The notes under the pieces are model-generated. The model was not told where the DNA came from, ran no database searches, and saw only the letters and a list, made by a program, of their open reading frames with translations. From NCBI GenBank assembly GCA_030704615.1, contig CM060734.1:28582001-28646000 (forward strand): DNA of 64,000 nt, written 5' to 3'. Made by a program: the position numbers and the translations under genes. This DNA is from Takakia lepidozioides (Eukaryota > Plantae > Bryophyta). Of this stretch, positions 966-33,103 are shown piece by piece (position 1 is the first letter of the stretch; each line of letters starts with the position of its first letter).

Positions 966-1003
966 TGACAGCGCTACCTTGCAATACTTTAATAAGAGAT
1001 CTG

Positions 1004-7663: not shown

Positions 7664-9524
7664 GTATGTATGTGGCAGCCAACTTAACTGGTTTCAAGTC
7701 TCTCCTTCTTCTACTTCTTATAGTGAAACACAAAATCCAACACCCTCGCATCTTCGTCTCTAAATTTTGGTTGAGACTATAGTTGGCTATGTACATCTGC
7801 CAAGCACGGATCAAAATTATAGCGTGCAGGGAATTAAAGGTTTTCCTTGCACATCTTTTGTTGTATCATTAGTATCCCTTTGAGTCTCTTGCCATGTTCT
7901 CAAGATCCAACACATTCAACCAAAAGAGCGACCAGAGGATTCCGTTGCCACACTTGAATCCCTTCATAGCTTGCCCATATAGAGTCGACTCCCATTTAGC
8001 GTTATCGACTCATTGCATGTGCAAAGCAGGAGCCTATGCATTAAGATAAAAAGTCATACCAAGGATTGAAGTATACAGAGTGTGAATTAGCCGAAGTATA
8101 ATAGAATTGAGTATAAAATGTCAGCAGGTGCATAATGTATAATGGTATCTGTTTATGCATCAGAGACTACATGTAGAGTCTTTCCGACAGCCAAGATTGG
8201 GGCCAAAAAACATAGAAGCGCTAACATATAATATGGATGAACCGGATGAAAATGGATGAAAATGTGACATTTATTTCACGGGCAGTATGACAATGTTCAT
8301 TTAAGATAATAGATAAACAGATAGAAAAGTTTTACTTTAAATTATTGAGAGGAAAAAAATTGAAACCAGTAAGGGAGAAGTTGCACTGTCAAGGGCATGG
8401 AAATGCTGTCCGGGTTGAAAATCACTACGAATTTCCTTCCAAATGTTACTATCTACACTTTGCTGGTGAAATTTCTGTAGCACCGAATATAAATTGAGAA
8501 GAGCTTATTGATTTACTAGAAATCGGCAGTTTCAAGGATGCAGTAAGGAGGTTTTCTTTCCCTGAGCTAGCACCAGTTATCCAACATTGTAGAAATGGTG
8601 TATAACTTATGTGTATTCGTAGGTCCAAGGATACCAAGGATACCAAGGATACCTGCGGTCTGGTTAGGACCCTTGGAAGCATGGAGGTCACCGGCTACTA
8701 CCAGCCTTGTGTGCCATGGAGCTCTCCTAGGATATTGGAGTGGCGGCAAGTTGCTTCTCTTGTTCTATAATTGTGGCAAGTGATTATTTCAACACTTGAT
8801 GAAAGCGGTGATTTCGACACATTAAAGAAATTGAACAAAGGATATATGCTTAAGGAACCCTTGATCACAAGAATTGTTTGTAAAAGGGGCTTTAATTTTT
8901 TTCCCCGAATAATCTGTAATAAAATCTAACCAGGGCCTCTGTCCCCTGTTTCTTTTTTTTCTTTCTTTTTTAAAACGTTTGTATTGCTGTAACTGCATGA
9001 ATCCATCGTGCAAGATAAAACAACACTATCAGTATAACTGAACAAATAGAATGGTGTTGAAAATGCTTGAAACCAAAAAATCTTTGAACTCTGAAAAAGG
9101 AAAGGGCGTGAAACATTCTGGGCATGGAGATGATTGGAACATGGAGGTTTGCTATCAATGTTGACAGTGAATTAGACAATCTTGTAATCTCACGGGCTTA
9201 TCATCCGCAAGACATTTTGCGGAGTCACTTTGCAAGCCCTGGCGCTGTCAACGGGTACAGGGTGCAAAATAAGGGATAGTTGGTGCATTTTTAAACAGGG
9301 GATGGTAGCAAGATATAAGCAAATATTGGGCATGAAGCAACGGGTAGGCATGTTTAAGTGGCTCTGAGAACCGGGTACCCCTAGTTTGTCATTAATAAGC
9401 TGGAAGTGGCCCCCCATACCTTACCAGAGAGGTAATGTGTGGCGGCTAGGGTGCATTTTTGGTTTAGAGACTGGTATAGTTAGGGTAGATTCTGAAAGTG
9501 CAAATATGAGAGAAAAACAATAAA

Positions 9525-9850
9525 GAATGGGTCATTTCAACTCTATTTTAAGAATAGAGAAAATCTATTTTAAGACTGGAGAAATGATGGGCCATTCTAT
9601 CTAAGAATGGAAAATGGTTATTTCAACTCTATTTCAGGAATTGGAGTTGATCATTTCAACTGTTGAAATGAGTCCTTCAAGTCTATTTTAAGAAATAAAA
9701 TTGGTCATTTCAACTATAAAGTCATATAAACTCTATTTTAAGATGGAGAAATGATCGGTCATTCTATCTAAGCATGGAAAATGAGTCATTTCAACTCTAT
9801 TTTTAGGAATTGGAATTGATATTGAAATTAGTCTTTCATTTCTATTACTC
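9525..9850. repeat. Degenerate tandem repeat of a GGTCATTTCAACTCTATTTTAAGAA-like unit
   Basis: About 8-10 imperfect copies. Related motifs recur at ~10668-10700 and ~11880-11985; probably transposon subterminal sequence. Confidence 0.55.
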
Positions 9851-9976
9851 TGATTTCATATAAAACTGGTGTAGAAGCATATCGCGCCGTAATGGAATAC
9901 AAAATAGCGCATCGGAAATGTAATTTCCAGTAGAATTTTCAGCCTTGAGTACGGATAGCGTGACATAATAAAAATA

Positions 9977-10100
9977 CACCAACAGTCAGTAGCTCAGTTG
10001 GTTAAGTGCACTGAGTGCCACCCAGATGATTCTGGGGTCAAATCTTGCTACTTGATGGGTGTGGTATTCTCTTCTCCCCCTCTTGGGCGGTGTCCCACTT
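9977..10100 (+). mobile_element. tRNA-derived SINE, family B (degenerate)
   Basis: A-box-like GTAGCTCAGTTGGTTAAG and B-box-like GGGGTCAAATC. The body ...CTCCCCCTCTTGGGCGGTGTCCCA is shared with 62785-62882. Confidence 0.55.
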
Positions 10101-10702
10101 GTTCGTCTCCATGGCGCATAAATGAAAGAGGTTATTTTCTCCTCTCACTATTCAGGGGCATGATTTGTGAGTTGTCGCTCCCAGGTGTTTCCCTTTTTTT
10201 TCTTTTTTTTTTAAATACATGTGGACATAAAACTTGTCGGTCGTTACACCAGCTCATATACCAGCCACCTGATACTAATACTGCTAAGAAGGTTATAATG
10301 AAGACCAATCCACCAATAAACTTCAACTTCAAGAGAGAGAAAGAGGAAATGTATAGCCGGACCTAAAACATAACTAGATCCCAATGCCAATGGCCCCTTG
10401 CGGTTGTCCCTTGCGCTTGCCATTCGTGCGTGCCCTTCCCACCTTGCTGCCAAAATCGACTCTCCCCCTTCTCTTGGAGTCCCTCTTATGCGCTCCCTAT
10501 CTGGACCCTCCATCTCTCCACAAACTCCCTCTTTAGCTATAAGCTTGCCAAAATGACCGCGCCACACCTATAGGTCCTCCTCCAATCTAGAACCTTCCCT
10601 AGCCAACTTTGGCATGCTATAGCCACCTTTATTCGGACAGTTTGCTAGATGTCCAATTTTCTTTGCTTATTTTAAGAAATGAAATTGGTCATTTCACCTA
10701 TA

Positions 10703-11362
10703 CTAGGGGTAACCTGTGCCGTTGGCCCAAGCGTTGAGTGTCATCTAAGCCCAAGTGTGCCCAAGTGTAAGATCTTCTAGTGCGTTTCCTATGTCGAGGC
10801 CCAAGTGCGACCTCTAGTGTAGCCTATGCCATTGGCCCATGTGTGAAGAATTGAAATCTAGACCAAGTGCAATTTCCTATGTATCCAAGTGTGTCTCCTA
10901 TATCGACCGTCTAAGCCCAAGTGCAATCTTCTATTCATGTATCCAAGTGCATCTCCCATGTAGAGGCCCAAGTGTCCAGTGTTATCTAAGCCAAGTGCAA
11001 TCTCCTATGTATCCAAGTATGTCTCCCATGTCAAGGCCCAATTTTATTTTTTTCATGAATTTATTGAGTAGTAATGTATCTAATCATATTGATATATCTC
11101 CGAGGCTCCAATCATTGTCCTAGGAAAGCCCACTTTGCTATTTTTCGTGAATTTCCAGCAACCAAAAGTACTTGAAATTTCATATCTCCCACGCCGCAGG
11201 TCCAAAAACCAGACCAAGCCGGTGCACCCCTCCTCATCGAGGGCTTTCCAACATTACCAAGCACTAGGGCTAGGGCCCCGCGGTTTGGGACATCTCAACG
11301 CTACAAAACAAAACAAAACAAACAAACAAACAAACAAACGCCTCGCTTCATATATTGATGGA
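10703..11362 (-). mobile_element. Non-autonomous Helitron
   Basis: Minus strand starts A|TC (11362) and ends with an imperfect hairpin GGGCCAACGGCAC, then GGTTACCC CTAG|T (10703). No TSD. Internal CCCAAGTG repeats and an (AAAC)n tract. Confidence 0.7.
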
Positions 11363-11553
11363 TAGTGATTTTGTTATGGAAGCCGATAAGGAGTTGGTTT
11401 TTATTCTAGCGACGACCGAAGGTCGAGAGCTCGTTTAGTGTAGAGCAGATATAGGGTGCCATAGTGCCACATCATCGTCGCCACGTTTCGTATGTCGTCA
11501 ATTTTTTTTATATCTGCCCGGACTGCCCGAAAATAACAGGGAGAGGTTGCAGC

Positions 11554-12356
11554 AAGTGTTGGACCGGTATATAGGTCTGGGGCGGGTATCAACTAGGGTA
11601 AGGGTAATGGTATGAACGATCATATCAGGCGGGTACGTGCAAGGGCAAGACCCGGCAATACCCAAGTGGGGCAGGATACATGGACTTCTAAAACCCTAGC
11701 ACAAACCAGACCAGTATGGTCTTCTTCCTCGCGCTACCACTCCAATACCATGTATGCGCCGGTTTAAGGGAGAGGATGCAGGGGTAGGGTTTAGGGTAGT
11801 TTTCATTAGGAGCATTTTAAATACAATGTATTAGTTTCTGCTCTTCAAGAGTGATAGAGAAGAGTTAGGGGCCCTTTGGGCTATTCAAATTGCCATCTCT
11901 ATATTGAAATGGGCCATTTGGTCTATTCAAATGGCCATTTGAATGGAATGAGCCATTTGAATAGTTCAAATGGCCATCTTATTTTTGGTATCCCTGTCGT
12001 ACTACCTTCGTGGCCGCCGGTTATTTTTTCCCTGTTATTGGTTGGAATTTACTATGTGTTCCTTGGCCTCGGCCTTTCATTCTTAATATGATTTAAAGGG
12101 CCTCTTTTTTTTCTTTTTTTTCTTTTTTTTAAGGAGTTAGATAGAATTGCACTAGTGCAGGTGGTACCAGACCCTGGCACATACCAGGCTGGTATGATTT
12201 TTAAAATTTTGTTTTATACCATACCATATACCATACCAGGCTGCCAAATTTACACATCATTTGTTACCAGTACCATACTGGTTTGAGAAATTCAACTCTA
12301 CCCCCAATACCTTTACCCTAGTGATATCAACAAACCATGATACCAGTCCAACACTG
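11554..12356 (+). mobile_element. Non-autonomous hAT element (MITE-like)
   Basis: TIR (A/C)AGTGTTGGAC(C/T)GGTAT at both ends; perfect 8-bp TSD GTTGCAGC at 11546-11553 and 12357-12364. The 5' end is related to the 6753-7663 element. Confidence 0.9.
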
Positions 12357-12525
12357 GTTGCAGCGGGGGGAAGGGACGATGATGGCTTGAGCGCGGAGGG
12401 GTTTCACACAGCGATCTCAGAGGGAGATCCTACATGGTGGATGCTGCACAACCTTTTCCATCCTGCAAATGTGGGCTCTTGGGTGTCAGGTTAGTCAGCT
12501 TGGGTGTTTCAATCCCTGCCTGCTC

Positions 12526-13570
12526 AGCTGCACCGTGGTGGTTCTCACAAACCAACCGACATTACCTGACTACAGACACATGCAGAGCACACAAGAGCTC
12601 ATTTTGGGTTCATGGTCGGTCAAATCCTCTATGGGGCCTCAAACAAGGTCAAGGACAATGTGGTGAGGGCACATTTTTCTTCGACCTATTTCAACCTGTT
12701 TTGCCCTCTCATCAGACTCGGCCCTGAGATGCATATGAATTCTGTAAGTTAGCTCATCGGGTGGATGCCTACTCAGCTACACCGTGGTGGTTCTCACAGA
12801 CCAATCCGACATTACGTGACTACAGACACAAGCAGAGCACACAAGAGGTCCTTTTGGGTTGATGGTTGATCAAATCCTCCATGGGTCATGACACAAGGTC
12901 AAGGACAATGTGGTGAGAGCACCTTTTTCTTCGACCTATTTCAGCCTGTTTTGCCCTTTCATCAGACTCGGCCTTGAGATGTATATTGAATTCTGTAAGT
13001 TAGCTCGTTGGGTAGATCTGCAGTGGTGGTTTGCAATGACCTTGACAAGTAACTGCCTATGTAGCAGCAGGAAAGTATCCAATAACAGAGATGAGGAGAA
13101 GCTTTGGAATGAACACTTTTCCGACCCCAGTCAATGGTGGGACAACGGAGACAAAAAGGTGAATGCCTGTTGGACTACAGAGAGAAGCAAATGCAATTCA
13201 GAATTGGAACTACTGTAATAAGTAGGGTTGGGGTGTTTGCTGGAAGAACTTCATGCCGTTAGTGTCAGCTGCTAGCAGCAAGTATTCATGATTTGTACGC
13301 AGGTAGGGATAGCTGAAGGACCATGGATAGAGGTCCAGATTCATCCAAGAGGGCCGGATTTCAAACACAAGATTAGTTCTAGTTCCCTGTGGATCAATAG
13401 CTACAAGAAATCTGCGTGGGTAGATGGTCAACTGGAGCTTTGCAGCAGCACAATTGATAGAACAAGGCACTGCTAATGAATGCACCTTCTTCAACACATT
13501 TCAACCAGTTTTTCCCTGTTATCAGAGTCGTCCCTAAATTTTCTTGTTGAATTCTGCAAGTTAGCTCTGA
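12526..13570 (+). pseudogene. Tandem OSB-type PDF-motif modules (organellar ssDNA-binding motif), decayed
   Basis: EEKLWNEHFSDPSQWWDNGDKK | GT..AG intron | IHPRGPDFKHKISSSSLWINSYKKSAWVDGQL (13090-13440). Two upstream ~248-bp duplicates (12526-12770, 12773-13020) encode frameshifted NP.LPDYRH....W..G.SNP.W. Each module is followed by a similar intron-like sequence. Confidence 0.7.
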
Positions 13571-15431: not shown

Positions 15432-16742
15432 GTGCACGGGAGATCTCCCGTGCTAATTTGACGACAATATGTGTTAATGTTGATCTTACTGGTGATTACC
15501 AGGATTTTGTGGGAGCTCATTTGACAATCAGAAGTTCACCTTGAATTCTCTGTGTCGACCATTTGAACCTTTCAATTTTTGAACATCTATATCTCTAGCG
15601 ATTTGAACCCTGACTGCCTGCATCTCAGTGAAAGTTTAGTTCTGGTTGATTGTATTTTACGCACATAGCAAGGGAGGTCTCCGTGCTACAGATACTTGAC
15701 TATTGCAGACTGATATGATTAATATTCTCATTCACTATAGCGCTCATTGAAGAAAAAGAAAGGAAGTATGACGCCTCCTGAAGGAAGCGTAACTTATGGA
15801 GTCACTTCACCCCCAAGGGCTACTGCCTTCCGCTAGGAAGGTGGACACCTTCATGACAACCAGACTGTGGTTTGAACCCACAACCACATCCAACATGGTA
15901 TGTGCCCAGTACCACTGGGCTACATGCTGGTTGTCGTGCTCATTGAATAATATAGTTATGAGTCCCAATTTGGTTCGTTATCTGATAAGGATATGTCGGG
16001 GTCCGAATATCGTATTTTCTTCCCTAGCGGACTGTCCTTTTATATATCTATTTCAACGGTGGCCCCTTCTTAATCTAACCTTGTAAATTGTATCCTCGTG
16101 ATGTTGTTATTGATGAGGTCTCTCGTGGTATGTCTCGTTGTTTTTTTAATATTACTTACTGGATTCTTTTTTGATCTCCGGACAAATAGCTTTTGTTCTG
16201 ATCTCCAAAATTTTGAATTTTTGAATGGCCAGTGGATGTGAATGGTTGTACATTTTACTTTGTTTCCGTCTGACGGTTCAACACATTTTGTATGTCGGAC
16301 GGGGCCGATTTCCGACGGTGTTTGATGGTTTTCTCCCTTACACATAGTGCTCGGGAGATGTCCCGTGCTACAGTGACTTGACTATTTCCGATCATGATTA
16401 TTATATTTTTCTTAGAGCTCATTGTAGAATACCCTTGCGGAATGTCTTTCACTACTCCGATATTAACGGTGGCGCCTTATGACGCCGACGTTCTAAATTG
16501 TATTTTCGCGATTGTGCTATTGATTTCTGTTGTAGTAGGGGAGGTCTCCCCTGCTATGTCTCGACGTCTGTTCGGCAGTTACTGGATTCTTATTTGGTAT
16601 TCAGAGGGTGACAAATAATTGTTGGCTTACCGGACAGTTTTAATTTCTGGATGACCAGTTCATGTGAATGTTTCTAGATCTTACTTTCTTTTAATTTGAC
16701 GGCTTGACACTTCTCGTATTGAGCACGGGAAATCTCCCCTGG
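15432..16742. repeat. Dispersed palindrome GCACGGGAGATCTCCCGTGC(TA) family
   Basis: Copies at ~15434, 15668, 16115, 16348, 16537 and 16722, plus a degenerate one at 24814 just beyond the 7.8-kb insertion. Confidence 0.65.
15752..15937 (-). mobile_element. tRNA-derived SINE, family A, full length
   Basis: Minus strand has A box TAGCCCAGTGG, B box GGGTTCAAACC and a T/C-rich tail. 10-bp TSD GCTCATTGAA at 15742-15751 and 15938-15947. Four more copies in the window. Confidence 0.85.
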
Positions 16743-17156
16743 TGGGGGGAGGTCTGAAAGCACCAGCAGCAAGCTGACATTGTACTTGAAATTGTATTTG
16801 ACATGGTATCTGATCTTGTATTTGACGGTTCAATGCATTTCGTTTGTTATTTCATGTCCTCAAGATGACAAAGATTTTTCTATCCCTTAAGTTTCAATAA
16901 TTCAAAAACATTATTCCAATGTTTCTACCAATAATTTTGAGTCACGACCCATTGTGGTTTTAAAGCTCTTACTTTGTTTCGTATATGATATTGACATGCA
17001 TTTGTTACGTTTTCACGCCCGGTTATCAGCGTCACGTCCGTCCGTCAACGTCAGGTCACGTAAGACCTGACTCTGACGGGACCTCCGTCACGTCAGGTTC
17101 GGGGAATATTCTGGTAAAAACAGTAGCAGGTAAAATACTGCCACTTAAGTAGTCAC

Positions 17157-18233
17157 GTCGCCGACACGGTGGCGGTGGCAAATACATTTTGAAAATTAAC
17201 AAAATGAACGCGCCCGCCAATTATGGCGGTCGCATTGTTTTTCAAAATTAAAAAAGAAATAGCGACCGCCGTATTGGCAGTCGCTTCAATTTTATTTTTT
17301 TTAAAAGCAAGATTGGCGGTCGCACTGGCGGTCGCTTTATTTTTCGAAATAGAAAAAGAAATAGTGACCGCCATATTGGCGGTCGCTTCAATTTTATTTT
17401 TTTTAAAGCAAGATTGGCGGTCGCACTGGCGGTCGCTTTATTTTTCGAATTAAAAAAACAAATAGCGACCGCTATCTTCGCGATCGCTTCAATTTATTTT
17501 TTTAAAAAAACAAGATTGGCGGTCGCATTGGCGGTCGCCTAATTTTAAAAAGAAAACAAGCGACTGCCATATTGGCGGTCGCACAATTTTGTAAATATGT
17601 ACAGAACATGCGACCGCCATATGGCGGTCGAATAATTTCAAAAATATAAAATCAAATAGCGACCGCCATTGGGCGGTCGCTTAATTTAAAATATATATAA
17701 AAAAACAAACGACCGCCATATGGCGGTCAGTAAATTTAAAATTATATAAAAAAAACAAGCGACATATGAAAATAAAAGTGACTGCCAACCGGTGGTCGCT
17801 TGTTTTAAAACAATACAATATTTGCGACCACCAAACCGGCGGTCGCGTCAATTTTAAAATATATATTAAGTTTAAGCGACCGCCAGCTTGGAGGTCGCTT
17901 AAACTTGAAAATATAAAGATTAAAAGCGACCGTCTTACTGGCGGTCGCATTTTTATTAAAAAAATTAAAAATAAAAGCGACCACCATATTGGCGGTCGCT
18001 TTATTTTAAATATATTAACAAATGAAGCGACCGCCATACCGGCAGTCGCATTATATTTGAAATAAAAAACAATAGTGACCGTCATACGGGCGGTCGCTTA
18101 AATTTAAAAATATACAAAATAGAAGTGACCGCAATATTACACAAAATGAAAAGAAATAAAAGCGACCGCAGTAGTGGCGGTCATTTGTTTTTCATAAAAA
18201 ATAAAAATAGCGACCGTAATATTAGCGGTCGCT
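17157..18233. repeat. Left subterminal array: ~22 GCGACCGCC-N4-6-GGCGGTCGC palindromes, ~50-bp period
   Basis: Directly visible; units are separated by ~25-30-bp A/T-tract spacers. Three units are head-to-tail (TGGCGGTCGCA(C/T)TGGCGGTCGC). Confidence 0.95.
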
Positions 18234-18672
18234 TAATTTCAAAATTACAACAAATATGGTTGTACAGCCTTTTCGGGTGGGCGCTATTGGTTTGTCATTT
18301 ATTCATTTCATTTTCATTTCACTTTCATCCTTCTTGGATCATATATAAGGGAGGATGGTCACCAAGCTCCTCAGTTCTTTTGGCGCAAACACTTGAGGTT
18401 GTTTTGGATGTTCTCTTCCATTGAACGAGAGTGTAGCCCAAGAAGAGGGTGCGCACCTTTTGCCATTGTGACTTCCACCAAAGCCACTTCAGCAGATTGT
18501 GTATAAGCTCAACACTACAACCCACATCGACCCACTTAGGTTGCTGACAGGTGTAGAAGTGTTGGGCTATCGCATTGCACTCTATATTCACAACACGTTC
18601 ATTTAATATGGTGACCCTAGCATACTAGCAAAAGAGGGCTGGAAGGATGTTCCGGAAGAGTTCCGGTGGCCG

Positions 18673-20816
18673 ATGACGAGATGCAAAAAATTCGTGAAAT
18701 GGTACCACATCAATCGATTGTGGCCTTTGGATAAGCATGACGTGCAAACCCGAAACAATTACGCAGAGTCCAGGTCTTGCATGAACTTGCATTTCCAGCA
18801 TAGGGCGAATGAGGTGCATTGCACATTGTGGGGTCAACCTCTCTTAAAGGGCCAAATCTCGTACACCTTGGCAGTCATGTTGTACATGGAGGTCATACTC
18901 TTGCGTCCAGTGAATTGCAAACTGCTAGTAGGAGGAACGCAAGGTTGCTATACGATTTGGAGTACATCCCGGACACGTTCGGAATACAACCGGCTGCAAC
19001 GTTAGAGGAACAACTGGCGGAAAGAGACCAGCGAATCAGGACCCTACATGACCGACTAGACTGGCAAACACTGCGCATAGCCGAGTTGAAAGCTAGATTG
19101 CAAGACATGCCTCCAAACAATGAAGGCACTGTTGTCCACAATGAGGATCGAACAAACGTCGTGGACATGGACGCGAAGTTTGCGATGCCCGATCGCAGTA
19201 TTGACCTCATCATTCACGAAATTACGGACGTCCTTGACTCTGTGGCCGATGAAACCATGGTTGAGGAACAGCGAATTGTGGATGAGAGAAGGAGGAAAAG
19301 AAAAAAACCAGTACTGAAAACCGAGGAATGTTCGAGGGTCGTCATTCAATCGGAGATGAACCCGATATTAGATGTCGACCGCGTTACAAAGGAGTGGGAC
19401 ATTGTCATGGCAACTGCATGGCGCTTGTCCAAAACGCTGGAGATTCGGGCATGGGTCCCATTGAATGGCAATTGGAAGAATTGGGTACAATGAGCGACCC
19501 ATTTGGCCTAGCACGGGTAGAGTGGGCACTGTCAGGCTTGCAACGTGTCGCACGCATGTCGAACCGTAGCGTGGATAACATTTATGCCAACATGCAAAGG
19601 TATAACGATCTCCGCATCGCATCAAGCGTGTTCGTCGGGTATACCAATTGGGCAGATGTGGATTCTATGTTCGATCGATGTGAGCACAGAATTTCGGGGT
19701 CGAACAGAAGCATAAACTGGAAATTGGAGATAGAGGAAGAGTGAGACACCACAACAAGGATGACCAGCCACATCAAACTGGTCCAGAGGGAGGAGATACC
19801 ATGAGGCGTTTTGCCGTCATACAGTTTGTTCGATGTATAGGAATCTATATGGCCTAGAGGGATGTCATGTGCTTGGATCATGTGGACATATGTTCCATCT
19901 CACATGTCTTATCCCGCAAGCCTTGCGGACGAGCGCTTGCCCAGAATGTCATACACCAATCCATCGTCGTTTCTATGAGCTGGTGGGCTTGGAGGATCGG
20001 ATGCCCATAGGCTTTGAATACAATCGACACAACCTCCCATTGGATGGGCTACCATATACATTTCTGAATTGTATGCATTGGGGCAAGAACTTGGTATGGG
20101 ATGCAGACAGAGAGATGCATGACATACATGCCGGAAATCCGACATACATCAAAGATCCCCAGTATTTCTGGGTCACACCTGACTGGGAGATAACCATACG
20201 TACGGGAGGCATTCGAGATTGGTGGGAGAGAGAGCAGTTTTGCCGCAATCTGGGAGGGCATTGGAGTCAAAGAAGGTCCAGGTTTATCCGGCTCTCACAG
20301 GTTCCATGGGTGCCGGAGGAGAACGAATTGTATGACCGACAACCGATTGGGAGACATTTGTTGTTGTCCGAACTTGAAGATGCTATAATATGTCAACGCC
20401 GAATGAATGAGGCGTACGAGGCGGCTTATCGTCGAAACGACACAATGATTAAGGACAGGGCCCGCGAGAGATAGTTGGAAAGTTTCAAAAATACCATCAA
20501 GGCAGTTGTAGAGAAATGGAGGCGACTATGGACAGACCGTTATCATCATGTTTTAGGGGCTCTATTGCCGGATGTGGACGGCCTCGTTGCCGATTTGCAT
20601 GCAGCCCGAGCACTTGTTCTCGATCCACCTCCGCCACGTCGTGAGAGTGAAGAAGAAAGTCAACTTTCGCCACGAAGTAGGCGGATGCAGGCCAGAATTG
20701 ATCACATGCCATTGGGCCCCTCGTTGACCACGAGATCACGGTCGCAAGCTCTGGCAATTGGCAGTGCAAATCAGGCCACAACATCAAATTCCTTGTCCTC
20801 GGACAGTGACGACTAG
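18673..20816 (+). pseudogene. Decayed element-borne gene: N-terminal domain, coiled coil, RING-H2 finger, low-complexity tail
   Basis: ORFs 18673, 18819, 19328, 19833 and 20475 chain through frameshifts and C>T-type stops (TGA 19742, TAG 20472). RING-H2 pattern C-S-M-(Y for C)...C-G-H-M-F-H-L-T-C...C-P-E-C at ~19827-19955. Basic NLS-like RRRKRKK. Confidence 0.7.
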
Positions 20817-21264
20817 GCTTTTAATGACCGACAGCGTAATACATATACAATATGCATTTTTGTTGTACCTTGAATATTGTTGAAAAACACATCGATGACA
20901 TTCCGTCAATTTTGTATATCACAAATTTTGTTAATACACAATGCACATGTGCGGCACCTGCCAATTTCAATTGCATGAGCAACGTTTTCTTCACATTTAC
21001 ACTCGTGTGATGGGGAAGAAGTAGTTCACCCTGTAAACAAATTTACAATGGTGTCATATTTGGTCATGACGTGTATGTGGGTATTTGCAATGAACTCCGA
21101 AAACTGGAGAACAAGGAAAATTGATGTTAACCAATAATTTATAACGAGTTACGAACGGTCGTCTTCCAAACAAATTTCGCTTGGTCCCTGCGTATTTCAT
21201 AATTATTTCGCAAAATCTACGATCTTTCTACAAACATACCCACAAAGTTCTTAAAGCACAAAAT

Positions 21265-22680
21265 AATTTCGATTGATCTCATATTACACTGGGACATATC
21301 AGAGGGTACATTGAACACACTGGCCAAGTTTCAAAGCGAACGAAAATCATTTGGATGGGCAACCATCCGTTGGCCCATTGAACAAATTTTGATTGATCTC
21401 ATATTACTCTGGGGCCTCTTACATGGCACATTGAACATAGTGGCCAAGTCTCAGAGCGAACCAAAATCATTTCAATGGCCAACCATCCGTTGAGCCATCA
21501 AATGAATTTCGATTGATCTGATATTAGTCCGGGACCTGTGAGAATGTGTCTCAAATGTACTGGCAAAGTTTGGAAGTAAACAAAAATGATTTGGATGGGC
21601 AACCATCCGTTCACCTGTTGAATGTATTCCGTTGGATCTGCTATTGCTTTGGGACCTGTTGGACTGTGTTTCGCATGCTCACGATTTTTTTTTCATTCTG
21701 TGTTTGAATGGGGCGTGTAATGTAGGCATATACAACGTGCGTGCCAAATTTGGGAGCGATCAAAATTCATTTGGACCCAAAACCGCAGTTTCTTCCCTGT
21801 TTTGCACTCCAAACTTGATTTGTGTTGTACTTCATGCACTCTTCATAGAGAGTTCTGCAATAGTGAGCGAAAAGAGAACATTTTTTTTTTGGGGCATTTT
21901 TTATTGGTCCAAATTTTGGCGGGGGAATAGCGGTGGGATGCTGGAAGCCGCAGAACAAAATTGAGCCAAAAACAAAATCGATACGTGCCCAAAACCCCCA
22001 GTGCAAACCTATTTATTGGCTTAAAATAAATTTAAATTCAATTAAATTGTGGAATGGCTTGAGGGGGCAGCGCGTCGATGGGGAGGCAAATGATTTATTC
22101 GTCTGTTGTGTCTCCGCACATGTGTCGCACATATGTTCAAGCACATGCGGGCAAAAGAGGGGCTTCAACCACATCCGTTCAATGGGTGCAATAGCCGTGC
22201 ACGCATTGCAGGATTTCTTTTTCGGATTGAACAAAAACCAGATGACAAGTGAACGCCTCATTGGACAATTGAACGAATTTCGATTGATCTTGTATTACAC
22301 TGGGACGTATCAGATGGTACATTGAACACACTGGCCAAGTTTCAAAGCGAACGAAAATCATTTGGATGGGCAACCATCCGTTGGCCCATTGAACGAATTT
22401 CGATTGATCTCATATTACTTTGGGGCCTCTTACATGGCACATTGAACATAGTGGCCAAGTCTCAAAGCGAACCAAAATCATTTCGATGGCCAACCATCCG
22501 TTAAGCCATCGAATGAATTTCGATTGATCTGATATTAGTCCGGGATCTGATACATGGTATGTTGAACACAGTGGCAAAGATTGAATGCAAACGAAAATCA
22601 TTTGGATGGGCAACCATTCAATCGCCCATTGAATGAATGGGGTTTCGTCTTCGATTATACTGGGACCTGTTACATGGTAT
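21265..22680. repeat. Two blocks of 120-bp tandem repeats (21265-21665 and 22255-22680, each ~3.5 units)
   Basis: TTCGATTGATCT...TGGCCAAGT.TCAAAGCGAAC.AAAATCATTT.GATGG.CAACCATCCGTT recurs every 120 bp. The two blocks are offset by 1011 bp. Confidence 0.9.
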
Positions 22681-22692
22681 GCCCTTTGAAGT

Positions 22693-22987
22693 TCTTTTTG
22701 TAGTGTCTCTTGCCTCGTAATGCGGCGCTTCTCCATGTCCACTTTATCCAATATGTTGATATTCTCCACCTGGAACATATTCACATACGTGTGCAGAAAT
22801 CCTTAAAGAAACAAATGACCATCTCCACTTTTATAAGCCTCATCCCCAACTTTCAGTTTTGATGGTCATTTGGTTTTTTAAGTCTTTATATACGCATGTG
22901 TGGATATGTTCCAGATGGAAGATATTAACATTGGAAAAATAAGAGTTGGAGAAGCACCTCATTACGAAGCAAGAGACATTACAGAAG
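22693..22987. repeat. Long imperfect inverted repeat (~130-bp arms, ~37-nt loop)
   Basis: 22693-22823 aligns with the reverse complement of 22861-22987, e.g. TGTCTCTTGC.TCGTAATG.GG.GCTTCTCCA, CCA.CTGGAACATAT.CACA and CAAATGACCATC. Confidence 0.85.
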
Positions 22988-23775
22988 ACCTCAGCATGTT
23001 GAACATCTGGATGAAGAACCTTGCCCATCGTCGCTTCAAAGTTCTAGCGCTTCTAAAATGATCACATGTTTGTTGGTGGAAGCAGATCTCGTAGGCCACA
23101 TTGATCTCGTACCCATCGAAGACTCCCGTAGGCCATATGGAATGGTTCATGTGATACATTTTTACAAATGCGATGTGATACATTTGTGAAATGATATCAC
23201 ATCAACCGTTTAATGTGGCCAATGCACCTCTTCCACACCATGGCGGAAATGTTCGCCACTTGAAAGCACAAACACAAATAATCCGTGCAAACAATCTCAA
23301 GAATCATATGTACTGCAAGGTGTTTCATATTGCCGATGTTTATGTAGCCGAATTCTTTAGGAATCGTTTTGCTACTCCCATGCCAACAACATCAGGTCCA
23401 CTGCGACTGCCATATTCTGAATTCCGTATCAGCCACCACGGACATGAAACCAGGAACTTCGCACAAAATCTCCAATTCATTCAATTTATGGTGGGCCCCC
23501 CCAAAAAAAATGGCATTATTCTTGAAAAGGCGCGACAGGCCAATGACGCCTCATCACGTGTTAGCGCGGCGCGACTGGCCAGTCGCCCCTCGCCACGCGC
23601 ACCCACATGGGAGAGGTCAAGGGTTCAAAACCACCTCCCCCCATCCCATTTGTTTCGTTTTTCCTAATCCGTAGCACCTCGCCACGTGGCTGACCAGACA
23701 CCGCTTCATAATTAAAAAATTAAAAACAACACGCCACACGGCGGGTCCCTGGATTTCTAAGAAAAAGAAAAACAC

Positions 23776-24615
23776 GCGACCGTCGCATGGTGGTCACTAT
23801 ATTTATAAAAACAAGAAGAGCGACCGCCACATGGCGGTCGCCGTTTTTTTTTAATATATATTAAATAAGCGACCGCCACATGGCGGTCGCTGTTTTTTTA
23901 AAATATATATTAAATAAGCGACCGCCTCCTGGCGGTCGCTTAATTCAAGATTCAAAATATAAATAAGCGGCCGCCGCTAAATGGCGGTCGCTTCATTTTT
24001 AAAAATATATTAAGTAAGCGACCGCCAAACGGCGGTCGCTTAATTTAAGAATCAAAATCAAATCGAGCGACCGCCTCCAAATGGCGGTCGTTGTATTCTT
24101 TATTAACAAAAATAGCGACGGCCGCCAAATGGCAATCGCTGCATTTTTCAAAAATTAACTGAAGAAGCGACCGCCAAACGGCGGTCCCTTTATTTAAAAA
24201 TAAAAATAAAAATAAGCGACCAATGCTAAATGACGGTCGCTAAATTTAAAAAATATATATACCGACCGCCACATGGCGGTCGCTGTATTTTTACAAAATA
24301 TATCAAAGATATAATAATAATAATATAATAAAGTGCGAGCGACCGCCAATCTGGGCGGTCGCTTCATTTAAAACATAATAAACTTCAACTGACCGCCAAT
24401 GTAGGCGGTCGCTTATTTTAAAATATAATAAAATACAAGCGACCGCCAATATAGGCGGTCGTTTCATTTATAAATAAAGAAATTACCGGCGACCGCCAAT
24501 AGAGGTGGTCACTTAATTTAACAAAATATTAAATTACAAGCGACTGCCAATATGGGCGGTCGCTTTTATTTTAAAAATAATAAATTATATGCGACCGCCA
24601 ATATAAGCGGACACA
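23776..24615. repeat. Right subterminal array: ~17 GCGACCGCC-N4-7-GGCGGTCGC palindromes, ~49-50-bp period
   Basis: Directly visible; same unit as the left array. Confidence 0.95.
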
Positions 24616-24904
24616 TTTTTTTTAACTAATGAATAAATATTAATAATTGGCCACGTCTGTTTTACACCGTGGCTGCCATGTCATTACAAAGGATAGAAGT
24701 AAATCGTAAAAGTCAAATGTAAAAAAAATTACATGGGTAAACAACCGGATTCGACGTGACATGACGGCCGACGTGTCAACGCCATGTCACGTCAGGAATG
24801 ATAACTAGGTTTTCACGGGAAAGCTCCTCTCATCTTCTCTCCCCTAAACCATCATATAGTAATCGAATGATTTGTTTCGTGTAAGTTGCGAGAAACTACC
24901 TATC

Positions 24905-25559
24905 TCCCAACCTGGCCGCCGGGCCAACTTGGAGCTCCGGCTGCTCACCGGGGCATAACGGTCCCCCTTTGATCTCCCAAAGAACCCTCCAACGATTTGG
25001 AACCAGCGGAATTCCCTTTGGTAGTTGGCAGTCCGGAACAGCTCCCCACTCTTTGTTCGCTTCCGGCTCGCTCGCTTACTCACTAGTTTTTGGTCACCAA
25101 CGGGCTTGCACCGTTCTCGGGGTTACTACTCCCTATATATACTTCTGTAGCTGTCCGCGGGGGTTTCACAAACAACCATGCCATTTTATGGCGAACCACC
25201 ACGAACACCCTCGACTCCCGGTGATGAGTCGTGGTGAGTCTTGGCCCACCCACCACGGCCCCTATGGACTGTGATGAGTCCCAAGACTCCCCACGACTCC
25301 CACCACGAGGTCTCCGCCTCAGGGTGAGTCCTATGCCACCCCCACTAAGTCCCGCTAAGCTACCACCACCCCTTATGGAGCCACCCCCACCGCAACCCGG
25401 TGTGCGGGGCTCCACCTAGTGAGCGCCTCTGCCTCCTTGAGTGCCTTGGGCACTCAAGGGTGCTTCAGCCCCCCATACCTATCGTTGCCATTGCCCCCAC
25501 CACAGGGGCAGCCCCTCTTGTGTCCCGACCCCTTGCCCTCAAGGCAAAGGGCCACGACA
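24905..25559 (-). mobile_element. Truncated LTR of a third copy of the Galadriel-like family, inserted in the RT of the outer copy
   Basis: Homologous to 26920-27579. It ends precisely ...GGGCCACGACA and abuts CCGGTGCTATTC (the PVLF codons of RT). The left end is lost by deletion. Confidence 0.85.
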
Positions 25560-26850
25560 CCGGTGCTATTCGCAGACAAGAAGGATGGGACGCTGCGAAT
25601 GTGTGTCAATTACAGGGCTCTGAATAAGGTGACTATCAAGAACCGGTACCCTTTGCCAAGGATCGACAACCTCTTCGATCGGTTGGCAGGAGCGAAGTAT
25701 TTCAGCTTGATCGATTTGTGCTCGGGCTACCATCAAATCCGAGTGGCGGAAGGAGATGAGGAGAAGACCGCGTGCAGGACAAGATATGGTTCATATGAGT
25801 TCTTGGTGATGCCTTTTAGGCTCACCAATGCACCCGCGACCTTTAACATGCTAATGAACAGCCTTTTTCAAGAGTGGTTGGATGACTTTGTGATCCTATA
25901 CATCGACGACATCTTGGTGTACTCGAAAACAAAGGAAGAGTACCTCGAGAACCTCAAAAGGATGTTCCAGAAATTGCGGGAAGAGAAGCTGTATGCCAAA
26001 GCTTCAAAGTGTGAATTCAGGGTTACAAAAATGGAGTTCCTAGGGCATGTGATTACACAGGATGGGATCAAAATGGATGACAGAAAGGTGAGGGCGATCT
26101 TGGACTGGGAGCCTCCGACTTCGGTCTCAGGAGTGCGATCCTTCCTAGGACTCGCCTCTTATTACCGAAAGTATGTGAGAAATTTTGCCAAGATCGCGGG
26201 GCCGTTGTCAGACCTTCTGTGTAAATCCAAAGTCTGGATATGTAACACCTTTTGTGGCCAAGCTTTTGCTGAGTTGAAGCAGCGGATGGCGGAAGCTCCA
26301 GTCCTAAAAATCCCGGAGTTCGACCGTCCATTTGAGATTCATACGGATGCGTCGGACTTCGCAATTGGGGGTGTGCTCATGCAGGATGGACGTCCAGTGG
26401 CTTACAAAAGTAAGATACTGAATGAAGTGGAGCGACGGTGGCCTACGCACAAGAAAGAAATGAAGGCGGTGGTGCATTGCCTTGAGCTTTGGCGCCATTA
26501 TGTTGGTTCCAACCCGGTGAAGGTGTTCACGGACAATGTTACGGTGAAGTATTTTGCCACGCAACCTAAGTTGTCCCCAAAACAACTTAGGTGGCAAGAC
26601 ACTTTGGCAGTGTTCGACGTGGATATCCAGTACAAACTGGGACGGGACAATGTGGTGGCCGATGCTTTAAGTAGAAAGCAGCAGCTCATATTGGTGTACA
26701 GGGGCGAGACAACGCTCCAAAGGAAGATCCGGAAGGCTTACCGGAAGGATGAGATGACGAAGTCCGGGAGGCGGGACTTGAGGATGGGGGTAAAATCGCA
26801 GTTCCACTTGCAAAATGGACTGCTCCGGTACAAGCAAAAGCATCTCTATG

Positions 26851-27579
26851 TGTCGCGCACCTCACTTCGGTAAGCTCCCCTTCAAGTCATAGTTACTCGC
26901 TTTGATGCGCGCGCCTGACTCCCAACCTGGCCGCCCGGGCCAACTTGGAGCTTCGGCTGCTCACCGGGACATAACGGTCCCCCCCTTTGCTTCCCTCTAA
27001 ACCCTCCACCTAATTGAGACTAGGAGAATTCCCTTTGGTAGATGGCAGTCCGGAATAGCTCCCCACTCCTTGGTCGCTTTCCGGCTCGCTCGCTTACTCA
27101 CTAGTTTTTGGTCACCAACGGGCTTGCACCGTTCTCGGGGTTACTACTCCCTATATAAACTTCTGTAGCTGTCCGCGGGGGTTCCACAACCAGCCATGCC
27201 ACTTTATGGCGAACCACCACGAAAACCCTCGACTCCCGGTGATGAGTCGCGGTGAGTCTTGGCCCGCTCACCACGGCCCTTATGGACCGTGATGAGTTCC
27301 AAAACTCCCCACAACTCCCACCACGAGGTCTCCGCCCCCATGGTGAGTCCTATGCCACCCCCACTAAGTCCCGCTAAGCTACCACCACCCCTTGTGGAGC
27401 CACCCCCACCGCAACCCGGTGTGCGGGGCTTCCACCTAGTGAGCGCCTCCGCTTCCCTGAGTGCCTTGGGCACTCAAGGGTGCTTCAGCCCCCCATACCT
27501 ATTGCTGCCGCTGCCCCCACCACAGGGGCAGCCCCTCATGTGTCCCGACCCCCTGCCCTCAAGGCAAAGGGCCGCGACA
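26851..27579 (-). repeat. 3' LTR of the inner element
   Basis: TGTCGCG...CGCGACA termini; the PPT is adjacent at 27580-27591. Confidence 0.95.
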
Positions 27580-28485
27580 CACACCCCTACCAACAGGGAG
27601 TCGATGTCCTCATCGACTTGTCCATTTTGTAGAAACGAACATCCAAGTTGTGGCGTCCCACATCAAGGAGTTTGTTTCCGCACCATGGCGTCCCATGGCA
27701 AAGAACCAAACCCCACACTTGACTCTACTCTCCACTAGCTAGTTCGGCCGACTTCCTCCAAGTCCCGGCCAAGGGTGGAGCCTCTCCAGCTCCTCCCAGT
27801 GCACTCTTCTTGGCCTACTTCAAGGCCAAGGAACGATCCTCCCCGAGGATCGAATCGCCTTACTGCAACAACATTGCTTGCGATCGCTCATGATGCCGCT
27901 TTTGGCATCACCTTGAGCAAGGGTTCACCTGGAACCCTCTTTGACTAGGAAGTTAACCTTGAACCAACCGTGCGCCCCAATCACTACAATTGGGTCCGCC
28001 TTGGAATGCTGGCCTGAGGTACGGGAACACGCCGAAGCCGCACTACGACTTCGTTCCGAGGCTACACGATTATAGTACGTGAACGGAAGCACGTAGCTTC
28101 CGCGTTAGCCCGCACTACAAGACAACCCCCTCGGTAGCGCAGTTATAGTACGCGCACGCGCCAGGTGCGCACTAGCAAGTGAACTCCCAAAGAAGGCGCA
28201 AATTTCCTTGCCCCTTGGATGGAAGTCACCCGATTTCGGCACTGCGCAAACACACGATTAACCCAATTTACCTCTCCCACTTTTGTAAGCTAGCATGCAT
28301 TCTACACACTAGCCAACCACACCATGCATCACCATTCCAAACACAATAGGACGCACAATATTTGGAACCCATTTCCTTTATAACAAATTTTTGTACAATA
28401 CAAGTTGTTGCAATCGGATTCCTGAGCTAGCTAAACCGGGCTAAGCATGCATTTCCTCCCCCACGCTCCAAGGTTGATGTCCCCA

Positions 28486-31400
28486 TCAACGCTTCTTCCG
28501 CTTTTGAGGTCGCCCTTCGAAAGTTGCAACCGCCTCGGATGCGTTTCCCATTTCTGAGGCACGCACCCAAGATGCCTCCACATGATGATAGCCCTTCCAT
28601 TTGACGAGATACTCCGTTTCTCGGTTCTTGAACCTCCTCGACTTAAGTATTGCCTCCACCTCGTACTCAGGTTCATTTTCATGATCCAACAGCATAGGTG
28701 GCGGACGCAACACTTGATGTCGATTCGGACGCGCTTCATCTTTGAAGTAAGGCTTCAAAATGGAGACATGGAATACTGGGTGCACCTTGCTGTTTGCCGG
28801 CAGCTCCAATTCATACACATCCTCATTCATAACCTTCCGAATGCGAAAGGGTCCCGCATACGGAGGTACGAACTTCGGACTCACTTCCGGAGGTAGTCGG
28901 AAATTCTTGACGTTCAACCAGACCTCTGTGCCTGCCTCAAACTTCACTTCCCTCCGCTTCCGATTCGCCTGCCTTTCATACCGTTTCCTAGCTTTGGCAA
29001 TGTTGTACTTTGCGAGCTTCAACAAACGCTCGCGTTTTTCCAGTACCGCCGCTACTGCCGGTTCCTCAACGTCCTGGGCGGCCCAACTTGTCGGCACCAG
29101 AGGTGCTTTTCCATAGACCAATACGAAAGGAGAAACTCCCGTTGCAAAGTGTTTTGTGTTATTATAACATAACTTTGCCGCATCCAAGTGCTCCACCCAG
29201 TCTGATTGGTCTGCCAACATGTAATTCCGCATGATCTGCTTCACCACGGAATTCACTCTTTCCGTTTGGCCGTCCGATGTAGATCGGAAGGCGGTGCTCA
29301 TCTTGAGCCTCGTCCCCATTTTCTTCCAAAGTGCCCTCCAAAATTTACTTGTAAACTTTGGATCGCGGTCCGAGACAATATCCTTCGGGAGTCCATGATA
29401 CTTGAAGACGTGGACGAAGTAAAGTCGCCCCGTCTCCTGCACCGTTGCCGTCTCCTTGGTGGGGATGAAATGACCAATTTTACTGAACCTACCCACCACC
29501 ACCATGATTGCATCGAATCCTTTTGACAGCAGCATAGCAGTCATGAAATCCATCGAGACACTTTCCCAAGACCCCTCTGGAAGCGGCAAGGGTTGTAACA
29601 GCCTCGCTTGCTTTTTGTACTCGCTCCGATTTTGTTGGCATGTGGTGCATGTCTTGACATACTCCTCGGCCTCCTCCCTCAGTTTGGGCCAGAAATACTC
29701 TTTCTTCAAGAGTGCCGCAGTGCGCTTGGCTCCGCCGTGGCCCACAAGCGGGCTATCATGGCATTCTCTCAAGAGGCTATCCCTGATCCCTCCCTTCGGC
29801 ACGTAGAGACGTTTTTGCTTATACCGGAGCAGTCCATTTTGCAAGTGGAACTGCGATTTAACCCCCGTCCTCAAGTCCTGCATCACGGACTTTGCCAGCT
29901 CATCCTTCCGGCAAGCCTTCCGGATCTTCCTTTGGAGCGCCATCTCGCCCTTGTACACCAACAAGAGCTGCTGCTTTCTACTTAAAGCATCGGCCACCAC
30001 ATTGTCCCGTCCCGGTTTGTACTGGATATCCGCGTCGAACACTGCCAAAGTATCTTGCCACCTAAGTTGTTTTGGGGACAACATGGGCTGCATGGCAAAA
30101 TACTTCACCGTGACATTGTCCGTGAACACCTTCACTGGGTTGGAACCAACATAGTGGCGCCAGAGCTCAAGGCAATGCACCACCGCCTTCATCTCTTTTT
30201 CGTGCGTTGGCCACCGTCGCTCCACTTCATTCAGTTTCTTACTTTCGTAAGCCACCGGACGTCCATCTTGCATAAGTACACCCCCAATCGCGAAGTCCGA
30301 TGCATCTGTATGAATCTCAAACGGACGATCGAACTCCGGGATTTTCAAGACTAGAGCTTCCGTCATCCGCTGCTTCAATTCAGCAAAAGCTTGGCCACAA
30401 AATGTGTTCCATACCCAGACTTTGGATTTACACAAAAGGTCCGACAGCGGCCCCGCGATCTTGGCAAAATTTCTCACATACTTTCGATAATAGGAGGCGA
30501 GTCCTAGGAAGGATCGCACTCCCGGGACCGAAGTCGGAGGCTCCCAGTCCAAGATCGCACTCACCTTCCTGTCATCCATTTTGATCCCATCCTGTGTAAT
30601 CACGTGCCCCAGGAACTCCACTTTTGTGACCCCGAATTCGCACTTTGAAGCTTTGGCATACAGCTTCCCTTCCCGCAATTTTTGGAACACCCTTTTGAGG
30701 TGCTCCAGGTGCTCCTCCTTTGTTTTCGAGTACACCAAGATGTCGTCGATGTACACGATCACAAAGTCATCCAACCACTCCTGGAAAAGGCTGTTCATCA
30801 GCGTGCTAAATGTCGCTGGTGCATTGGTGAGCCCAAAAGGCATCACCAAGAACTCATATGAATCATACCTTGTCCTGCACGCGGTCTTCTCCTCATCTCC
30901 TTCCGCCACCCGAATTTGGTGATAGCCGGAGCGCAAGTCGATCCGGCTAAAATACTTCGCTCCTGCCAACCGATCGAAGAGGTCGTCGATCCTTGGCAAA
31001 GGGTACCGGTTTTTTATAGTCACCTTATTCAGAGCCCTGTAATCGACACACATCCGCAGCGTCCCATCCTTCTTGTCTGCAAATAGCACCGGGGCTCCGT
31101 AAGGTGACTTACTCGGCCGGATGTACCCCTTTGACATTAGATCCTTGAGCTGAGTCTTCAGCTCGACCAACTCTCTGTGGCTCAACCGGTAGGGCGCCTT
31201 GGCAGGCGGTTCCGATCCCGGTATCACCTCAATCTTGTGGTCAACTCCTCTTCGCGGTGGCAAGCCGCTTGGTAAATCCTCCGGCATCACTTCCTGGTAT
31301 TTCTCCAAAATCCCCTTGATCCAATCTGGGCTCGGCTCCCCATCGCCTTCTCCTTTCACTTCTCTAATGTAAAGCAAAAACTGGGGCCCGTGTGCCTCCT

Positions 31401-33048
31401 CCACGGCCCACTCCTTTGCTGACAGAAGGTTTATTCGCCCTCCCATGGATTTGGGCGTTTCTGACACTCGTAAAACCTCGCCACCATTCCCACATGGCAG
31501 CGTGACTACTCTCTTGCGGCCATCTATGACCGCTCCGGATTTGCTCAAAAAGGTCATCCCCAAAATGAGATCCACTCCATCGATCTCGCAGATGGTGAAG
31601 TTCTCACGTCCCTCCCAACTCCCTAGTTGAAGGGGAACATCAATCGCCAACCTTGTCGCCAACTGTGGTTCTCCTTTGGCAGAACGTACCTCAATAGAGG
31701 CCCCCACGTCACTTGTCGGGAGTCCCAGCTTTTGTGCCGTTGCCGGTGTCATGAAGGAGTGGGACGCTCCTGTGTCCACCAACAACGACACATTAGTTCC
31801 GGATATTATCCCATCCACGAACAATAACTGACTCCCTTTTCGTAAGGCGCCAGTTTCCTGATACAACTCACAAGAAAATTTGCCTACCTTGCAAGTCCTG
31901 GCGACCACCGCTTCCACCAAGCGACTGATGGTATCTTCCGACAGCTCCGTGGTCGCCTGAGTCATGTTCAATTGCCGGGGCTTCGTGCACTTCTTGGCCA
32001 TGTGCCCGGGCTCCCCGCAATTGAAACACACTCCATCAAAGGTCACATTCTGTCCGCCATAAGCCGCTCCACCCGCTTTTCCTTTTGAAGCACCGGGTGC
32101 CGCCTTGACGTGTGAAGGCCCTCCCTTCGATTTCCACGTGCCAATGTCGCCGCGTGACCTATCCCACTTCTTTTCCAGTCGAAAGGAGTCACCTTCCCGC
32201 CGGGTCTTCTTGTGGTTCAGCTCCGTACGGCCTTGTTTCTCACCCCTAGGGACATTCGAGAAACATTCAGCCCTCTCAATTGCCTCGTTCAAAGTCTTGG
32301 GTGGCTTCTCCTCCAACTTCCGCCTGGCCCATGGGGCCAGTCCCGCAACAAAGTTGAAGACCATTTCTGGTTCTGCCATGTCCATGACTTCGAGCAACAG
32401 CACATTGAAAGCCTGGACATACCCCCGAATGTCATCTGTTTGCTTCAAATTCCTCATCTTGTCCCGGGCAAGCCAGGACGCGTTGAGGGGCACAAACTGT
32501 CTCTTCATCAATTCCTTGAACCCACTCCAGTTCAAGGTTTCCGGACTTGGACCTCGGTCGTGAAGGCGTTTCTGCCACCATTGTTGAGAATAGCCCCTCA
32601 AATAGGTGGGAGCCACTTCCACCCGATCCTCGTCACTCAACTTGGCCGCCCGGAAGTACTGCTCTAGCTCCAGGAGCCAGGTGTTGAGTGCCTTCCAATT
32701 TCGGACGCCCTCGAAGGTGCCGGGTTCCTTAGGCTTCACCTTAAACTTTACCTTAGTGGAAGTGGCATTAGCCGCCTTCAACACGTCTTTTAACGTCCCG
32801 CCAAACTGCGCCAACAACCCTTCCCAAAAGGCAGCCGGCATGGGAGGCATCTCTTGGTTTATCGGAGCTCTCAAGGATTCCTCGGGCTCCGACTCCTCGG
32901 ATTCCTCCCGCTCTTGAGCGGTCTCGTTTTTGGAAACATGCATCGCTTCCTCAAACGGCCGCCTCGGTGACACGTCGCTCCCATCGGGCTCACCGGGATC
33001 ATCATCTTTTGGGCCGTTCCGCTTTCGCTTCGGCTTGCCCGACCCCAT
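28486..33048 (-). CDS. Gag-Pol polyprotein (gag, zinc knuckle, aspartic protease, RT, RNase H, integrase, chromodomain), ~1520 aa from the first ATG
   Basis: [14 protein letters not shown]; [10 protein letters not shown]; YIDD; TDASDFAIG; H-x6-H...CTTC; SMDF/SDRD/GQTE; GPF; [10 protein letters not shown]...YLVKWKGY...SW. Confidence 0.95.
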
Positions 33049-33089
33049 GATGAGGCCAATCCCAAGGACGATCGCGTACTGAACTCTAA

Positions 33090-33101
33090 GCTCTGATACC
33101 A
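33090..33101 (-). other. Primer-binding site for initiator Met-tRNA
   Basis: TGGTATCAGAGC lies two nt downstream of the 5' LTR. Confidence 0.92.
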
Positions 33102-33103
33102 AG

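Follow-up and report, generated by a model that had tools for sequence, protein, structure and literature searches.

The window examined here, a 64-kb stretch of contig CM060734.1 of Takakia lepidozioides, contains a DNA element that carries a RING-H2 gene and has an array of short palindromes at either end, and that is probably a dead member of the hAT transposons (Table 1). The element is flanked by the octamer TTTTCACG, which is exact on both sides and forms an 8-bp target site duplication (TSD). Directly inside the TSDs are terminal inverted repeats (TIRs) of 11 bp, which match each other at nine of the 11 positions. Their consensus, CCYRGTTATCA, has just two matches without mismatch in the window, and these are the two TIRs themselves, in inverted orientation; the pattern was taken from the data itself, and a shuffle control is therefore no independent test of it. 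The ends of the element read CCCGG and CCTAG, and short motifs of the GTCACGTC/ACGTC type occur within ~140 bp of both. A 9-bp duplication, GTTTTCACG, can also be read, but it leaves the element with ends of unequal length; for this reason the 8-bp TSD is preferred as the more economical reading of the one copy at hand. The original prediction had described a bounded element with an 8-bp TSD and imperfect CCYRGTTATCA TIRs—a nonautonomous DNA transposon that has arrays at its ends and a RING-H2 gene as accessory cargo—and this description holds. The window contains no further copy of the element, and no part of the element is repeated elsewhere in it. The original prediction had also looked to empty sites for confirmation; in the window, no second copy of the junction was found, the right flank turning into a gypsy long terminal repeat (LTR) 87 bp past the TSD.

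The two arrays, predicted at ~1 kb and ~0.85 kb, were found at the two ends and are built from one and the same palindrome. Each unit consists of the half-sites GCGACCGCC and GGCGGTCGC, separated by a spacer of 4–6 bp, to give a palindrome of 22–24 bp that is phased at ~50 bp (period 49–51 bp) in A/T-rich filler. In the first third of the left array, palindromes alternate with direct pairs of GGCGGTCGC, resulting in a 102-bp super-period. The full palindrome has six exact occurrences, all within the element and none elsewhere in the window (chance expectation, 0). C>T and G>A changes make up 42 of the 67 deviations of half-sites from their consensus, which is the pattern expected of long-methylated, silenced DNA. 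The right array has no gene beside it in this copy.

The left array is followed by a TATA-like box and then by a gene of the RING family on the plus strand (about 18607–20813). The gene is in separate pieces across several frames, and it was searched piece by piece, with no joined or repaired reading. The first piece, which encodes the conserved N-terminal domain of the family, has a stop immediately upstream and no in-frame start codon. The coiled-coil-like middle occupies two other frames and is far shorter than in relatives of ~1,100 amino acids. An in-frame stop (20472–20474) splits the RING and post-RING part in two (19764–20471 and 20475–20813). The second zinc-ligand cysteine of the RING is replaced by tyrosine, and because of this the Pfam RING scores of this copy (16–18 bits) are under the cutoffs of 27–31 bits. 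With its frameshifts, stop, lost zinc ligand, and missing in-frame start, the gene is a pseudogene, in agreement with the single decayed coiled-coil/RING-H2 gene first proposed.

The interior downstream of the gene contains two blocks of 120-bp tandem repeats and a hairpin of ~300 nucleotides (−69.8 kcal/mol, z = −13.4), both of which had been predicted, as well as ~0.8 kb with no recognizable content. For the hairpin, Rfam returned only generic long-hairpin or low-complexity matches far under the cutoffs. The prediction that the element lacks a transposase was likewise upheld. Pfam detected no transposase domain in the 42 six-frame open reading frames (ORFs) of the interior, a hAT transposase from a related locus (L003, described below) gave no tblastn match to the window at E≤1, and relaxed Pfam searches of the minus-strand ORFs of 20.8–23.8 kb yielded no transposase or kinase remnants.

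Table 1. Features of the element and their positions in the window.
Feature	Position	Strand	Description
Left TSD	17010–17017		TTTTCACG
Left TIR	17018–17028	+	CCCGGTTATCA
Left subterminal stretch	17029–17170	+	Short motifs GTCACGTC, ACGTC, and CGTCCG
Left palindrome array	17171–18232		~20 units of GCGACCGCC-N4–5-GGCGGTCGC, ~50-bp period
TATA-like box	18342–18349	+	TATATAAG, read from sequence; between left array and RING gene
RING gene, piece 1	18607–19002	+	N-terminal domain conserved in the family; 44% identity to P0001 (residues 45–146)
RING gene, middle	18813–19741	+	Coiled-coil-like, in two other frames (18813–19490 and 19286–19741)
RING gene, RING-H2 part	19764–20813	+	RING-H2, conserved C-terminal (post-RING) domain, and tail
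120-bp tandem repeat block A	21265–21684		~3.5 units
120-bp tandem repeat block B	22261–22695		87% identity to block A (396 bp; 21265–21660 against 22276–22671)
Long inverted repeat (hairpin)	22693–22988		Arms of ~140 nucleotides
Right palindrome array	23776–24610		~17 units, spacers of 4–6 bp
Right subterminal stretch	24611–24798	−	Motifs GACGTGAC and GTCACGTC
Right TIR	24799–24809	−	CCTAGTTATCA (reverse complement)
Right TSD	24810–24817		TTTTCACG

Outside the element, the left flank has a ~270-bp sequence that is directly repeated at 65% identity (16022–16293 and 16432–16719) and a 12-bp microsatellite (16775–16826). The right flank is occupied by a nest of Ty3/gypsy chromoviruses (24904–36717). 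The nest includes copies of a ~660-bp LTR (24904–25560, 26919–27580, and 33172–33833, with an inverted copy at 36051–36717), an intact gag-pol ORF of 1,538 amino acids with a chromodomain on the minus strand (28486–33102), and reverse transcriptase/RNase H and integrase fragments (25419–26873 and 34086–35015).

The RING-H2 protein family and its hAT neighbors

When 1.84 billion representative sequences were scanned in full with HMMER, 88 relatives of the RING protein were identified (cluster representatives; best E 5e-48, 48% identity), and a word-indexed search identified 16 long members of the family. Full-length members are encoded by single intronless ORFs of ~1,040–1,230 amino acids and have a common layout. 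A leader rich in lysine and arginine, which resembles a nuclear localization signal, precedes a strongly conserved N-terminal domain of ~130 amino acids. This is followed by a long and variable coiled-coil-like middle, the RING-H2 domain, a conserved post-RING domain of ~150 amino acids, and an acidic/basic tail.

Intact relatives have the eight zinc ligands (C3H2C3) properly spaced and score above the 27.3-bit cutoff of Pfam zf-RING_2 (P0003, 29.4; P0004, 35.2; and P0005, 31.8 bits). The profile of the family RING matches RNF24, RLIM, Arkadia, and EL5 in the PDB, and a model of the domain superposes on structures of RING E3 ligases at 1.2–1.3 Å over 47 residues. On the combined basis of these scores, profile matches, and the model superposition, the domain is assigned to the RING-H2 type. 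It has the same C-x2-C...C-x-H-x2-H-x2-C...C-x2-C signature and the same fold as these RING-H2 E3 ligases. Unlike in these others, the RING of the family is set in a protein of ~1,100 amino acids, whose N-terminal and post-RING domains match no solved structure, and the RING of the window copy is broken.

The N-terminal domain (L003:4822–5421 in the intact gene of L003; 18607–19002 in the window) has tryptophan, histidine, and arginine at invariant positions, and its isoelectric point (pI) lies anywhere between 5.9 and 9.6, depending on the member. The domain was modeled with a mean predicted local distance difference test score (pLDDT) of 86.9, rising to ~96 in the core. The modeled fold had no match in the PDB (best Foldseek E ~5; best VIA-align Z 3.5 over 48,161 chains), and the domain belongs to no Pfam family. 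Fold searches with the post-RING domain found no structural match either, and a search of the ESM Atlas gave no usable match. The N-terminal domain is a candidate for an undescribed domain.

A scan of JGI metagenome contigs yielded nine loci with the RING gene, just two of which (L003 and L005) have useful flanking sequence. Both have a hAT transposase next to the RING gene. In L003 (13.5 kb), an intact hAT transposase of 1,031 amino acids (700–3795; DUF659, 1e-32; Dimer_Tnp_hAT, 4e-10) lies head-to-head with an intact RING gene of 1,184 amino acids, and arrays of CGGACGG-type motifs fill the 1-kb intergenic space and the flanks. In L005, the 3′ end of the RING gene lies tail-to-tail with the C-terminal 382 amino acids of a transposase (1559–2704; Dimer_Tnp_hAT, 5e-7). 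This fragment matches the L003 transposase with an E of 7e-43, its unusual long tail included, and so belongs to the same transposase lineage. The tail itself is an acidic, serine-rich extension of ~380 amino acids that follows the hAT dimerization domain and is conserved between L003 and L005 to the last residues. The TIR of the window element was not found in the metagenome loci.

Downstream of its RING gene (8640–13537), L003 has tandem units of ~2.5–2.6 kb, each of which starts with a CGGACG-type array (8715–8738 is identical to 11321–11344), and which hold long inverted repeats (9575–10065 and 11533–12006). The contig opens (1–15) with a GTCAC-type motif that by eye resembles window positions 17031–17046, 13 bp inside the left end of the element; the assembly may therefore have broken almost at the terminus of that transposon.

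The order of elements upstream of the RING gene is the same in four lineages (the window, L001, L003, and L007): a motif array comes first, then a TATA-like box, then ~300–400 bp, and then the RING ORF. The motif differs from lineage to lineage, being the GCGACCGCC palindrome in the window, GCGGACG..CGTCCGC palindromes with a 52-bp period in L001, CGGACGG repeated every 12–14 bp in L003, and a 61-bp unit along with CGGACGCG palindromes around the TATA box in L007. Owing to this recurring order, the arrays look like putative subterminal protein-binding sites that double as a promoter region.

Probable assignment to a hAT lineage and competing explanations

We conclude that the element probably arose by deletion within a hAT lineage and is now dead and nonautonomous; full-length members of that lineage would have a RING-H2 helper gene next to the transposase. 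hAT is the best assignment because the RING family adjoins hAT transposases in both L003 and L005, and because the element has an 8-bp TSD and short TIRs, the latter falling within the hAT range of about 10–25 bp. The hAT transposase, which consists of a DDE core and a C-terminal hAT dimerization domain, is absent, as expected of a nonautonomous copy. The original prediction held that the element fits none of the known classes cleanly, and this is not sustained, given that hAT transposases lie next to RING relatives on two independent metagenome contigs and that the TSD measures 8 bp and the TIRs are short. It correctly noted the departure of the ends from the (C/T)AG start usual in hAT elements, and was also right in setting the element apart from CACTA. 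The latter class (En/Spm) was rejected, as the element has neither CACTA/G termini nor a 3-bp TSD. An affinity to Zisupton/KDZ, which had also been raised, found no support: there is no KDZ domain among the 42 six-frame ORFs of the element, and the neighbors of the RING-gene relatives are hAT rather than KDZ transposases.

Several observations weigh against the hAT assignment. The ends do not follow the hAT consensus (C/T)A(A/G)NG (YARNG), which is common but not universal, and the target TTTTCACG fits just half of the nTnnnnAn preference of hAT elements. The length of the TSD and the boundaries rest on one copy, for which the 9-bp alternative exists. The link to hAT is made by the cargo gene of distant relatives (42–49% identity) and not by an autonomous element with the same ends, and the binder of the palindromes is at the level of a candidate. 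It is the indirectness of the link, the divergent ends, and the single readable copy that keep the assignment at probable.

The element duplicated an 8-bp target on insertion and has short inverted ends, and its transposase has been lost, probably through internal deletion. Having lost its transposase, this copy could therefore have moved only with transposase supplied in trans by a full-length copy. The two kilobase-long arrays would be subterminal protein-binding regions, read by the transposase of the family or by another element-encoded protein so as to recognize the ends and bring them together. In addition, the left array would control the RING gene promoter from upstream, and the right array may formerly have preceded a gene that was lost in the deletion. 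The RING protein is putatively a nuclear, ubiquitin-ligase-like accessory factor.

The default candidate for the reader of the arrays is the transposase; the RING protein is an alternative to which we give a minor share of belief. The latter candidate is part of an explanation that keeps the same element class and has the RING protein or another helper bind the arrays, as a system directed at the element itself, for regulation or against silencing, in the manner of VANC and its tandem motifs; the original prediction had proposed a cis/trans system of this kind. This explanation we consider rather unlikely, even though it is the strongest of the competitors. It would account for the constant position of the lineage-specific arrays ahead of the RING gene promoter, for the pairing of palindromic sites with a long coiled-coil-like middle that could dimerize, and for the nuclear-localization-like stretch before the strongly conserved N-terminal domain. 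However, that domain, confidently modeled as its core is, resembles no solved fold, DNA-binding or otherwise, its pI gives no consistent positive charge, and the variation of the palindrome spacers between 4 and 6 bp speaks against a rigid dimer. In addition, recognition of subterminal repeats by hAT transposases is established, as in the AAACGG motifs of Ac and in Hermes.

A second explanation, which we regard as improbable, places the element among the nonautonomous Mutator-like elements (MULEs): its target duplication would then measure 9 bp, and a member of the same RING helper family would be its cargo. The direct repeat can indeed be read as the 9-bp GTTTTCACG, and accessory genes and motif arrays are best known from MULEs, as in VANDAL/VANC and Ulp1-carrying MULEs. 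Set against this are the unequal ends that the 9-bp reading produces and TIRs of 11 bp, where long TIRs (and TSDs of 9–11 bp) are typical of MULEs. No MULE domain occurs among the 42 six-frame ORFs, and both loci with enough flanking sequence show the RING family beside hAT rather than MULE transposases.

The noncanonical end sequence and the absence of a transposase from this copy might instead point to an undescribed superfamily of DNA transposons, with a transposase other than those of hAT, MULE, CACTA, and KDZ. We find this very improbable, as relatives of the cargo gene adjoin ordinary hAT transposases, and an 8-bp TSD with short TIRs requires no new class. Finally, the notion that the TSD and TIRs flank a pseudogene and a local satellite by chance, with no mobile element involved, is suggested by the single copy and lack of an empty site in the window, but can be practically dismissed, since an exact 8-bp repeat abuts inverted 11-mers that are the sole two exact matches in 64 kb, the two ends mirror each other in their arrays and short motifs, and the cargo family is transposon-linked elsewhere.

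Relation to known transposon systems

The closest parallel is with nonautonomous hAT elements of the Ac/Ds type. Shared with these are the 8-bp TSD, the short TIRs, an internal deletion that removes the transposase, and short motifs repeated inside both ends; and relatives of the cargo gene of the window adjoin transposases with DUF659 and hATC domains. The window element differs from Ac/Ds in having CCCGG/CCTAG rather than YARNG ends, in having ~1-kb arrays of a phased 22–24-bp palindrome in place of a few hundred base pairs of scattered hexamers, and in belonging to a lineage that carries a large RING-H2 gene.

En/Spm elements of the CACTA class also have arrays of short motifs at both ends, in direct and inverted pairs. 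In En/Spm, the 5′ array bound by TnpA doubles as the control region of the element's own gene, and this accessory protein is distinct from the transposase. The window element has none of the CACTA ends, the 3-bp TSD, or the TnpA/TnpD homology. With VANDAL/VANC, the similarity is the pairing of an accessory protein family with lineage-specific arrays of short motifs that differ between related elements. VANDAL belongs to another transposon class, however, and the RING-H2 protein has no similarity to VANC; anti-silencing is known from VANDAL, whereas both binding of the arrays and anti-silencing are putative here.

While accessory genes that serve transposons are well documented in Mutator and CACTA elements, to our knowledge they are hardly so in hAT. 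No published description of a RING gene that travels with hAT transposases was found in the literature searched. hAT elements with subterminal repeats are textbook knowledge, but a conserved RING-H2 helper gene in hAT and phased palindrome arrays on the kilobase scale go beyond it, and the literature searched gave no description of them. As a dead, nonautonomous element, the window copy is unremarkable; what it offers is a clean example with clear boundaries, from which the ends, the TSD, and the layout of the arrays can be read.

By analogy with these systems, we tentatively raise a further possibility, which is doubtful at present, namely that the hAT lineage runs a two-part system of self-recognition. 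The RING-H2 helper, with its N-terminal domain of unrecognized fold and a coiled coil that would dimerize, would be recruited to the element's own arrays at its ends and promoters, where ubiquitin ligation would counter silencing by the host or control the transposase. If true, the system would amount to a counterpart of VANC or TnpA that works through ubiquitin, co-evolving with the motif lineage by lineage.

The wider significance lies in a large, conserved, and intronless RING-H2 family with two domains of unrecognized fold, which occurs with hAT transposases in several plant-like lineages, in each behind a lineage-specific array. If the arrays are read by this protein or by the transposase, they would offer a new and tractable example of self-recognition by a transposon, and could link ubiquitin signaling to the control of transposons.

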